From the NCBI GenBank assembly GCA_033442325.1, contig JAWQFM010000021.1, forward strand, positions 221,033 to 263,148: a stretch of 42,116 nt of DNA. Direction: 5' to 3'. Of this stretch, positions 13,315 through 16,300 are shown piece by piece. How positions within the stretch are numbered: position 1 is the stretch's first letter; every line of letters starts with the position of its first letter. This DNA is from Salpingoeca rosetta. Lineage: Eukaryota > Protista > Choanoflagellata. Below the pieces are notes generated by a model. It made no database searches. It was not told where the DNA came from and was given only the letters and a program-made list of their open reading frames with translations. Both the position numbers and the translations under genes were made by a program.

Positions 13315-16300
13315 TCAAGGGAAGTCGATGGAGAGGGGCTCGTCCGAGGCCTGGCCATGGTTTGCACAAAAGTCCTGCAGCAGATCAACGCAGTTGAGGT
13401 ACCCGCAGAAGCTGCAGCGGTGGCGTTGGGGAGGGGGGGGGATGGTCAGGGTTGGAGTACGGAGCGTCAGTGATGACAGTGGGGTGAGGGGGCGGAGATG
13501 AGATCCAAGGTGGACGCACCAAGGACAAACGTGACAGTACACAAGGGCATGAGGGTTGCGGGTTGCGTCGACGTCGTTGGCACAGTGAGAGGGAGAGGAG
13601 AGGGGGGAGGGGAAGAGGATGGGAGAGACCGAGAAGGAGAAACACACACACACACACACACACGCACACACACACACACACACACACACACACACACACA
13701 CACAGACCTGCAGCCCGGGATGGTGGCGGCGTAAAAGATGGTGAAAAGCACAACAAAGGCAGCAACAATGCCCCCGAGCGCAAGAATGGAGAGCAGGTGC
13801 TTCTTCGCCTTGTCCCGCGTGCCAAAGGTGATATGCGGCAGAAACGCAAGCGCTGCAAGCATCCCAAACAGGAACCTGTCAAGCAGGGAGGGAAGAAATG
13901 GTTGATTGGAATGTTGCGGTGAGCGGTGTGGTGGCAAGGGTTTGGAAGAAAAGGTGAGTGTTCGGGTGACCAGGAGCGTGTCCTCAGCACAGCAGCCGCA
14001 ATGGCAGAATACATGCTCTCCAAGCAAGCCCGCACAGCGCTCATGGAACCCCCCCCCCAACAAACACACACTTTGCACAGCACACGCGCGCACTGAACAC
14101 GCCACATGACAGCAAACGATCTCTTCCCCCTCCTGCATTTCTCCTCGAGGTGCGGCGACGACTCACCCGCCAATGTGGGAGTAGTTGTCGACGTAAGGCA
14201 GGATACCAATGGCGAATGCAAGGACGATGATGACGATGAGTTTGGCCAGCTCCGAGCCCGGCCGCTCAATAAACTTCCACGACTGCACCAGCTCAACCAC
14301 CTACCAAAGGCGGGTGGGGGTGGGAAGGGGAGAAGGGTGGGTGCAAGGGTGAGTGTAAGCGTGCAAAGGGTATGAGTAGGAGTAAGGGGGAGTGTGTGTG
14401 TGTGTTTGTGTAAATGTGTGTGTGAGTGTGTGTGTGTGACTCAGAATGCACCTCAGCGCCACCCCAAGAACACCCAACACCACCTCGACATCCCCTTAGT
14501 CCGTCACACACGGCATCACCCCTCAGCATAACCCCCATCACCACCACACATCCAACATCACCACGACGCACCAGTGCTGCGAGGATGCCAAAGTTTGCGC
14601 CGGAAGCGCCGACGGTGACCTGATAGCGGGAGAAGAGGCCGCTGATGACAAACCCGCCCGCCCCGCTGATCATGTAGATGAACGCTGCATTGGAGGGTGG
14701 TGGTGGTGATGGTGGTGTCGGTGGTGGTGGTGGTGAGGTGGGAAGAAAGGAGAATCACACATCACACACACACACACACACACACACATGAGCAAACACG
14801 CACAAACACACGAGCATACACGCACACACACACACGCACACACTCGCACACACACATACACACATACACACATCACACAATGCCCCCCTCCCCTGCAGCA
14901 GGAACTGACCGACACGCCACCAGCCGGCGATGCGCTCGACATCGGGGAGCAGCGAAAACTGCAGGAGGAGAACAACAAAGAGGTGAATGCCGCCAGCGTG
15001 CAGGAAAATGGCGAGGAAGAACCGGTACCTGTGCAACATAGCAGCGGTGGTGGTGGTGTTGTTGAGGTCGTGGTGGTGTTGACGATGAGGTCGTGGTGGT
15101 GGTGTTGATGACGAGGTGGTGGTGGTGTGACAGTCAAGTGAATGAGGAATGAGAGTGAGTGGGCTTGCCTCGAGTAAGAAACAAACAAACCAAAAAAAAA
15201 AAAAAACTCCAAGTGACAATGCCACAAACTGAAATGGGACAAACAGGCACAACACCAAAGAGAAAGAACACCCGCTACCCTCTGGGGTCCGCTCGCTTTT
15301 CCAACCTTCAACATCAGCATCAAGCAATCCTCTCATCGGCGCCATCGCCATCACACTATCACCTTCACTACCATCAATCACCATCATCGCCATCATCGCC
15401 ATTAACACACCACTGGTCCGGCGCATTCCGGGCGAACGGAGAGAGCCCGCACTTGTCCTCCAGGCAGTTGGCCTGCTGGCACGACACCTTGTTTGGATGG
15501 AACACACCGCGCAGCGCCTTGGACTCGCACGTCTCCTTGGTGGTGAGCGTGCACTGCCCTGCCAGCCCGTAGCAGCAGGGGCGGGCCTGGATGGCACATG
15601 TACACGTCCGCTCGCTCGATGTGATGTCATCCCTGAGTTCGCAGCCGGGGAACGCGTCCGGGTTTACGCAACAGGACGGTCCGCCACACATCTGCGAATC
15701 GTCAAACGTGTACTGGCAGTCGCTCTCAACCGTGCTCCAGCACACCCCAGAGTTGATGCAGCACCTGACCATGGTGGTGGTGGTGGTGGTGGTGGTGGTG
15801 AGTGGTGATCGTGGTGGTGGGGTGGGGTGAGGGAACGTCGTGGTGTCATGTTATAAAATGGCCAATGTCCACAAGAGAACACGTGGTTCTCACATACATA
15901 CACACATACGCACGCACATACTTACATACATACACATACACACACGCACGTACACACACACACATATTCGCACGCACATACCCACACACGTATGCTTAGA
16001 AACACATCCACCACGTCAATGAAAGAAACACACGCGTGTGCACGCACCCCATCTGTTGTTCCAATTCCAGTTGCGGTTTGATGAACGTGTCTGTGACATA
16101 TTTGTCCTTGCCCATGCACGGTAGATACTTTGCTCCGAGAATCACCAAGTCCTCGTGGCGCGGCCCTGCACAAGAGGGGGCGGTGGTGGTGATGTGGTTG
16201 ATTGGTGAAGATGGTGGTGGTTGGTTGTGGGGGTGGGGTGTGTGATTGACACAGTGGTGGTGGTGGTGGTGCTACTGATTGTCAATGCATCTGCGGATGT

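Follow-up and report, generated by a model that had tools for sequence, protein, structure and literature searches.

PTSG_07804, a gene of the choanoflagellate Salpingoeca rosetta, encodes a real, spliced protein of iRhom architecture in which the serine-histidine dyad of rhomboid proteases is intact and the disabling proline of the animal iRhoms is absent. The gene was analysed within a 42,116-nucleotide stretch of contig JAWQFM010000021.1 (assembly GCA_033442325.1, positions 221,033 to 263,148 of the forward strand; hereafter, the window), where it lies on the minus strand. Animal iRhoms are a textbook pseudoenzyme and essential ADAM17 cofactors in the shedding of TNF and EGFR ligands. Sequence, fold and phylogeny all support the reading of PTSG_07804 as an iRhom relative that has the complete dyad and lacks the proline. 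We consider it probable that the active site is of an intermediate kind and that the protein is perhaps a slow or conditional protease; PTSG_07804 looks like a living intermediate between enzyme and pseudoenzyme.

Homology, predicted fold and active-site residues

The protein was matched by the Pfam Rhomboid family with an E-value of 2.9e-30 and by human iRhom2 with 2.3e-88, iRhom2 and iRhom1 being the sole matches among PDB sequences. Exon 8, which encodes the main part of the cysteine-rich iRhom homology domain (hereafter, IRHD), by itself matched the IRHD of iRhom1/2 at ~1e-12. The similarity to rhomboids and iRhoms is therefore far beyond chance. The alignment to iRhom2 spans the juxtamembrane HRPFFTWW, the first transmembrane helix (TM1), the luminal domain and the later helices, through to the C-terminal cysteines. 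The N-terminal tail comprises ~430 low-complexity residues before TM1, of which approximately the last 40, next to the membrane, alone align to iRhom2; a Pfam scan returned no match to Rhomboid_SP (PF12595) in PTSG_07804 at E<=1.

An AlphaFold model of residues 430-855, calculated from a 74-sequence alignment, contains seven long helices and has a mean predicted local distance difference test score (pLDDT) of 92.3 and a predicted template modelling score (pTM) of 0.89. The best matches of the model among solved structures were iRhom2 (8snl_B; template modelling score 0.87, E 9e-34) and iRhom1, followed by GlpG, for which the overlap corresponds to the six-helix core only.

The IRHD was further characterised with a profile made only from iRhoms that carry a proline directly before the catalytic serine position (hereafter, GPx iRhoms), against which PTSG_07804 scores 2.9e-34. 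The match of fungal and plant rhomboids to this profile is confined to about the first 30 positions, and these proteins are therefore without an IRHD. The preliminary description of this DNA had listed the cysteine-rich IRHD, the ELVQSW and LPHITFG motifs and the C-terminal cysteines as iRhom hallmarks, and this stands in part. PTSG_07804 has 15 of the 16 cysteine columns conserved in the IRHD of GPx iRhoms, and column C569 is common to the choanoflagellate clade described below and animals only. The motifs VELxQSW and FLPxxxFG are found throughout IRHD-bearing rhomboids and hence are not specific to iRhoms; three of the four C-terminal cysteine columns occur in 12/12 fungal and plant active rhomboids and the fourth in 6/12, and the IRHD itself extends beyond the iRhoms. 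Within the IRHD of iRhom2, the iCERES motif contains two tryptophans required for exit from the endoplasmic reticulum (PMC8233286); the corresponding region of PTSG_07804, ...ELRDDITSSERTC..., keeps DDIT and has neither tryptophan.

PTSG_07804 is strongly iRhom-like. Together with human iRhom2/RHBDF2 and iRhom1/RHBDF1 (PDB codes: 8SNL, 9O58, 9Q7Y and 9XY4) it has a long N-terminal segment, of which only the juxtamembrane part aligns, HRPxFTxW before TM1, an IRHD with the same cysteine framework, seven TM helices, VELxQSW, LPxITFG and the C-terminal cysteine motif. In both, the TM2 asparagine is lost and Tyr-Arg takes the place of Trp-Arg in L1. PTSG_07804 differs from the human proteins in the tail and iCERES features given above and in reading GASG where they read GPAG, with the serine present and the disabling proline absent.

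E. coli GlpG served as a ruler for residues of the active site; the correspondences adopted (Table 1) are those that fit both the motifs and the HMMER alignment to iRhom2, in which 'vtvGASGanfg' stands over 'aevGPAGsqfg' and 'dnysHigg' over 'dniaHifg'. GlpG TM6 was misplaced by mafft --add and GlpG TM4 by BLASTP, and those placements were not used. The preliminary description had read VGASGANFG in TM4 and DNYSHIGG in TM6; minus-strand translation at the serine and histidine codons agrees with both, and each lies in an annotated exon of PTSG_07804. Its claim that GxSG and the TM6 histidine are retained with no proline before the serine also holds (Ala712, Ser713, His765), and the TM2 histidine is kept too. 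The TM6 sequence S764-H765-I-G-G768-F-L-F-G772 fits (A/S)HxxGxxxG and aligns to A253-H254...G257...G261 of GlpG. The protein thus keeps intact its dyad, its GxSG turn, both histidines of TM2 and the packing glycines of TM6, and in the AlphaFold model the TM4 helix begins at Ser713.

With a proline placed before the serine, Drosophila Rhomboid-1 lost its activity, mouse RHBDL2 was strongly impaired and bacterial AarA was left virtually inactive (Zettl et al., PMC3149277), and the same proline has been called invariant in iRhoms (PMC3149277). His150 and Asn154, together with the backbone near Ser201, form the oxyanion hole of GlpG (PMC6400518, PMC3093617). Set against the published description of iRhoms (RHBDF; PMC3149277, PMC6451368), PTSG_07804 has the 7-TM rhomboid core, the cysteine-rich IRHD and the grouping with RHBDF1/2, and departs from it in having no invariant proline and in retaining the catalytic residues Ser713 and His765. 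As in MEROPS family S54, the GxSG serine is at the top of TM4 and the histidine in TM6; the HxxxN pair of that family is reduced to its histidine (His661, Val665).

Phylogenetic position and other IRHD-bearing rhomboids

Homologues were gathered with HMMER from residues 430-855, giving 150 representatives, with fungal, plant and ctenophore proteins supplied by two word-indexed searches, among whose matches were few iRhoms and no animal RHBDL1-3. The same backbone was obtained with FastTree (157 rows), with a quick IQ-TREE run and with a careful IQ-TREE run (LG+C20+F+G4 with posterior mean site frequencies, PMSF; 87 rows x 397 columns), from which support is given as bootstrap/SH-aLRT (Shimodaira-Hasegawa-like approximate likelihood ratio test). 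All IRHD-bearing proteins group together (99/98). PTSG_07804 (P0001 in our set) falls in a choanoflagellate clade of 13 rows (100/98) with members from S. rosetta, Hartaetosiga gracilis, Choanoeca perplexa, Choanoeca flexa, Diaphanoeca grandis and Salpingoeca infusionum. This clade is joined (99/95) to an animal clade (100/99), inside which lie the ctenophore proteins (100/100) and all GPx iRhoms (100/96), the latter including those of Hydra, Oculina and Paramuricea. Because the choanoflagellate clade is sister to the animal clade, PTSG_07804 is, on this tree composed without the animal RHBDL1-3, a co-orthologue of the animal iRhoms (RHBDF1/2), which bears out the affinity to RHBDF1/2 raised in the preliminary description. 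The proteins of S. rosetta, H. gracilis and C. perplexa form a subclade (100/95), in which identity is 43-55%, terminal branches measure 0.36-1.2 changes per column and A or G precedes the serine.

In the ctenophore orthologues (P0004-P0009, P0004 being Mnemiopsis leidyi ACHWQZ_G014188) the motifs are VGASGALYG and DNxAHIGG, and these proteins form the sister group of all GPx iRhoms (100/99). As they combine GASG and the histidine with this position, the disabling proline would have arisen after the ctenophore split or have reverted there. Ctenophore P0004 resembles PTSG_07804 in its IRHD, in GASG and the histidine, and in a replaced TM2 asparagine (threonine in this case), with ~40% identity over 97% of the core. 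Unlike PTSG_07804, the ctenophore proteins lie inside the animal clade, are ~620 amino acids long and have an extra, animal-specific IRHD cysteine.

The S. rosetta genome holds three more IRHD-bearing rhomboid paralogues (Table 1), every one with a degenerate active site, and PTSG_07804 is the only IRHD copy in this genome with both GxSG and the histidine. Members of the same degenerate-paralogue clades are present in other choanoflagellates, and catalytic residues have therefore been lost repeatedly in the family.

IRHD carriers beyond the iRhoms include two proteins of the centrohelid Pterocystis (P0072 and P0089), MMETSP transcripts and an Acropora millepora protein (P0132). The IRHD is therefore neither animal-specific nor iRhom-specific, which conflicts with its description as unique to iRhoms (PMC8233286). 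Both Pterocystis proteins and P0132 have a complete HxxxN/GxSG/His site, so that the domain is present on apparently active proteases outside Holozoa. P0132 (XP_029189340.2) was automatically annotated as 'inactive rhomboid protein 2-like', and judging by its residues the label 'inactive' looks like a misnomer. These three proteins share with PTSG_07804 the rhomboid core and the IRHD (14/16 cysteine columns in theirs); unlike it, they keep the TM2 asparagine and fall outside the choanoflagellate and animal iRhom clade. The filasterean Capsaspora owczarzaki protein CAOG_00981 (P0071, 1087 amino acids) has an IRHD, keeps the histidine and reads GGTG, and it is probably dead since a serine-to-threonine change inactivates GlpG (PMC3093617).

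Active rhomboids of the secretase type, represented by fungal proteins named 'rhomboid-type serine protease', by plant RBLs and, by extension from these, by Drosophila Rhomboid-1 and RHBDL2, are like PTSG_07804 in the GxSG, TM6 histidine, TM2 histidine, L1 arginine, 6+1 TM arrangement and C-terminal cysteines; core identity reaches 40-44% for chytrid and glomeromycete rhomboids. Unlike PTSG_07804, they keep the asparagine of HxxxN and have no IRHD.

Protease or pseudoprotease

The protein is predicted to reside in a membrane, its layout being a long and disordered tail on the cytoplasmic side, then TM1, a luminal IRHD rich in disulphides, six more TM helices and a luminal cysteine-rich tail. 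In the proposed mechanism, His765 in TM6 would activate Ser713, which sits at the top of TM4, and only His661 and backbone amides would be left to stabilise the tetrahedral intermediate. Transmembrane clients may be docked by TM1 and the IRHD, as ADAM17 is by iRhom2. Because the oxyanion asparagine is Val665, residual serine-dependent proteolysis, probably slow, is plausible and we put its chances at about even.

Several observations weigh against catalysis. The conserved oxyanion asparagine, replaced by Val665 in PTSG_07804, is absent from the whole choanoflagellate and animal clade, where V, T or S stands instead. The serine and histidine are kept in 28/28 sampled sequences that retain the asparagine (16 IRHD-bearing proteins of protists or corals, the rest from fungi and plants), and lineages without it are mostly decayed (GASP, GANP, GSDP, GALP, GAGG, GGTG, His to Gln/Asn), which suggests that loss of the asparagine usually marks loss of catalysis. 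An independent-pairs test of asparagine loss versus site decay had too few pairs for significance. Among the 55 GPx representatives, which carry the proline by construction and are dead, the serine is kept in 27/55 (Ala in 26/55), Gly202 in 50/55 and the histidine in 46/55; these positions are therefore under structural constraint, and retention of serine and histidine is only mildly informative.

Since the loss of the asparagine is common to the whole clade, present in every animal iRhom and choanoflagellate member, PTSG_07804 is already one step along the path to a pseudoenzyme and not, as the preliminary description suggested, in the state before the transition. With the asparagine already gone, the proposal of an active, pre-transition protease is only half supported.

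It is a serious possibility, if short of even, that PTSG_07804 is already a pseudoprotease. Catalysis would have been lost together with the TM2 asparagine in the ancestor of choanoflagellate and animal iRhoms, leaving a non-catalytic chaperone or trafficking adaptor, and Ser713 and His765 would persist as two of the few residues tolerated where a small side chain is needed at the top of TM4 and helix packing constrains TM6. The clade-wide replacement of the asparagine, the residues retained in dead GPx iRhoms, the decayed sites (GASP, GANP, GALP, His-to-Gln/Asn) of the three S. rosetta paralogues and of many relatives among choanoflagellates, and the iRhom-like overall architecture and fold all agree with this explanation. 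The distribution of the remaining site residues argues against it: the equivalent of His150, GxSG and the TM6 histidine occur together in all three divergent members of the S. rosetta/H. gracilis/C. perplexa subclade, and among the other IRHD proteins in the tree with neither asparagine nor proline the full set is found only in four ctenophore orthologues, which count as one lineage, and in P0159.

An Asn-to-Ala change reportedly left partial activity in purified bacterial rhomboids, so that catalysis may survive the loss of this residue; the same change is said to have abolished the activity of Drosophila Rhomboid-1 in cells. Beyond the favoured explanation of an intermediate active site in PTSG_07804, we tentatively propose that iRhoms arose by stepwise inactivation of ancient, pan-eukaryotic, IRHD-bearing active rhomboids, with PTSG_07804 and the ctenophore proteins as intermediates that may still cleave. 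The TM2 asparagine would have been lost first, in the stem of choanoflagellates and animals, and the disabling proline gained only after ctenophores had split from other animals; the client-docking IRHD and TM1 of iRhoms would have begun as the substrate-recognition module of a protease.

It is very improbable that PTSG_07804 is not orthologous to iRhoms and instead represents an ancient IRHD-bearing active rhomboid paralogue drawn to its position by a tree artefact. The family of IRHD-bearing rhomboids is indeed spread widely across eukaryotes and includes several holozoan paralogue clades, and animal RHBDLs are missing from the tree; however, the sister relation is strongly supported under a site-heterogeneous model and identical in topology in the FastTree and quick IQ-TREE runs, two features of the clade, the derived cysteine column C569 and a missing TM2 asparagine, are held in common, and the end branch of PTSG_07804 is not long (0.37).

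Gene model, surroundings and significance

Exact codon mapping of the 855-residue protein onto the window gives 13 exons between 19027 and 13318 (Table 1), and the identical database protein, retrieved through the N-terminal exon, is on record as 'hypothetical protein' and also as 'Peptidase S54 rhomboid domain-containing protein'. Read by hand and allowing for split codons, intron 1 and the introns flanking both catalytic exons have GT-AG ends. All junctions from residue 441 onwards align without gaps to a complete transcript-derived open reading frame (ORF) of H. gracilis (P0002), and most do so also against C. perplexa, Mnemiopsis and a vertebrate-type iRhom. Although the S. rosetta expression tables searched do not mention PTSG_07804, these ends and junctions make it extremely improbable that the GASG or the histidine exon is a gene-model artefact outside the mature mRNA, as do a Pfam Rhomboid match that is partial on single exons and unbroken over residues 644-780 of the full-length protein, a confident AlphaFold model across these helices, and several probable RNA runs that contain 0.36-0.53 of the words sampled from 13300-16300, comparable to that region's exon fraction of 0.37.

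The window has ~55% GC (guanine plus cytosine) and its introns are rich in (CA)n. Long (CA)n/(GT)n microsatellites lie in many introns of PTSG_07804 and yield long, spurious Cys-Val or His-Thr ORFs on both strands. Downstream of PTSG_07804 is a gene with a Pirin N-terminal domain (PF02678, 3.3e-18), broken by assembly gaps; the window contains four such gaps of 100 N each.

As to possible clients, the S. rosetta genome gave no match to ADAM17_MPD (PF16698), a result that is not evidence of absence since the control was also without a match. Loci for reprolysin-type (ADAM-like) metalloproteases are present in the genome, two of them on the contig of the window.

Table 1. Coordinates of PTSG_07804 and associated features. 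Positions are those of the window unless a contig (C) is given; L numbers denote loci.
Feature	Position	Strand	Description
Exon 1	18938..19027	-	Residues 1-30; ATG start 19027; GT-AG with split codon
Exon 2	17733..18665	-	Residues 31-341; cytoplasmic N-tail, low-complexity, His/Lys/Ser-rich
Exon 3	17223..17450	-	Residues 342-417; poly-Lys tract, then juxtamembrane segment alignable to iRhom2
Exon 4	17010..17081	-	Residues 418-441; HRPFFTWW and TM1 start; aligned to iRhom2 HRPYFTYW
Exon 5	16622..16735	-	Residues 442-479; TM1 remainder and luminal loop start; helix at model residues 2-21
Exon 6	16350..16379	-	Residues 480-489; NFWFG, start of L1/IRHD
Exon 7	16044..16163	-	Residues 490-529; IRHD N-terminal part (LGAKYLPCMGKD)
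Exon 8	15410..15760	-	Residues 530-646; main Cys-rich part of IRHD
Exon 9	14911..15027	-	Residues 647-685; YR motif and TM2
Exon 10	14569..14685	-	Residues 686-724; TM3 and TM4 start with G711-A712-S713-G714
Exon 11	14166..14297	-	Residues 725-768; VELVQSW, TM5, TM6 start with His765 in SHxxGxxxG
Exon 12	13710..13874	-	Residues 769-823; TM6 remainder, FLPHITFG, TM7; C823
Exon 13	13318..13413	-	Residues 824-855; luminal C-terminal Cys motif C826, C831, C839 (after C823 in exon 12)
Stop codon	13317-13315	-	PTSG_07804
GlpG W136			PTSG_07804 Y647
GlpG R137			PTSG_07804 R648
GlpG H145	15000-14998	-	PTSG_07804 H656
GlpG H150	14985-14983	-	PTSG_07804 H661
GlpG N154	14973-14971	-	PTSG_07804 V665
GlpG G199-L-S201-G202	14604-14602	-	PTSG_07804 G711-A-S713-G714; position of Ser codon TCC
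GlpG Y205			PTSG_07804 F717
GlpG H254	14177-14175	-	PTSG_07804 H765; codon CAC
GlpG G257			PTSG_07804 G768
GlpG G261			PTSG_07804 G772
S. rosetta paralogue	C3 ~4-9 kb (L003, L011, L014)		GASP, His kept; TGASPALYG/DNWSHVGG
S. rosetta paralogue	C21 ~385-388 kb (L006)		GANP; TGANPAVYG/DNWSHVGG; TM2 HAGAIQLVII
S. rosetta paralogue	C3 ~2.142-2.145 Mb (L012, L013)		His to Gln; DNFSQLAG; TM2 FVPVGAVHH
Reprolysin-type loci	C16:957664-958299; C21:121507-122634; C21:351489-352402; C10:1881254-1881796
Microsatellites (approximate)	13640-13700, 14400-14450, 14760-14880, 15850-16020, 16740-16830, 17150-17220, 17500-17720
Pirin N-terminal domain	11265-11510	-	PF02678
Assembly gaps	5795-5894, 8549-8648, 10666-10765, 11914-12013

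Published descriptions present iRhoms as conserved in metazoans, or as restricted to them, and the proline as invariant (PMC3149277, PMC6451368). A literature search found no paper that links iRhoms with ctenophores or names PTSG_07804, an earlier mention being possible; where papers found name iRhoms together with choanoflagellates, the contexts are unrelated, and an earlier remark is again possible. PTSG_07804, its choanoflagellate orthologues and the ctenophore proteins are members of the iRhom clade with an IRHD, an intact dyad and no proline. If sponges have GPx, the distinction between GASG and GPx would rank among the rare molecular characters that bear on the branching order of animals. 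With these proteins and the fully equipped protist and coral ones, the passage from protease to trafficking adaptor can be approached as a testable series of natural intermediates, for which S. rosetta offers a genetically tractable organism.

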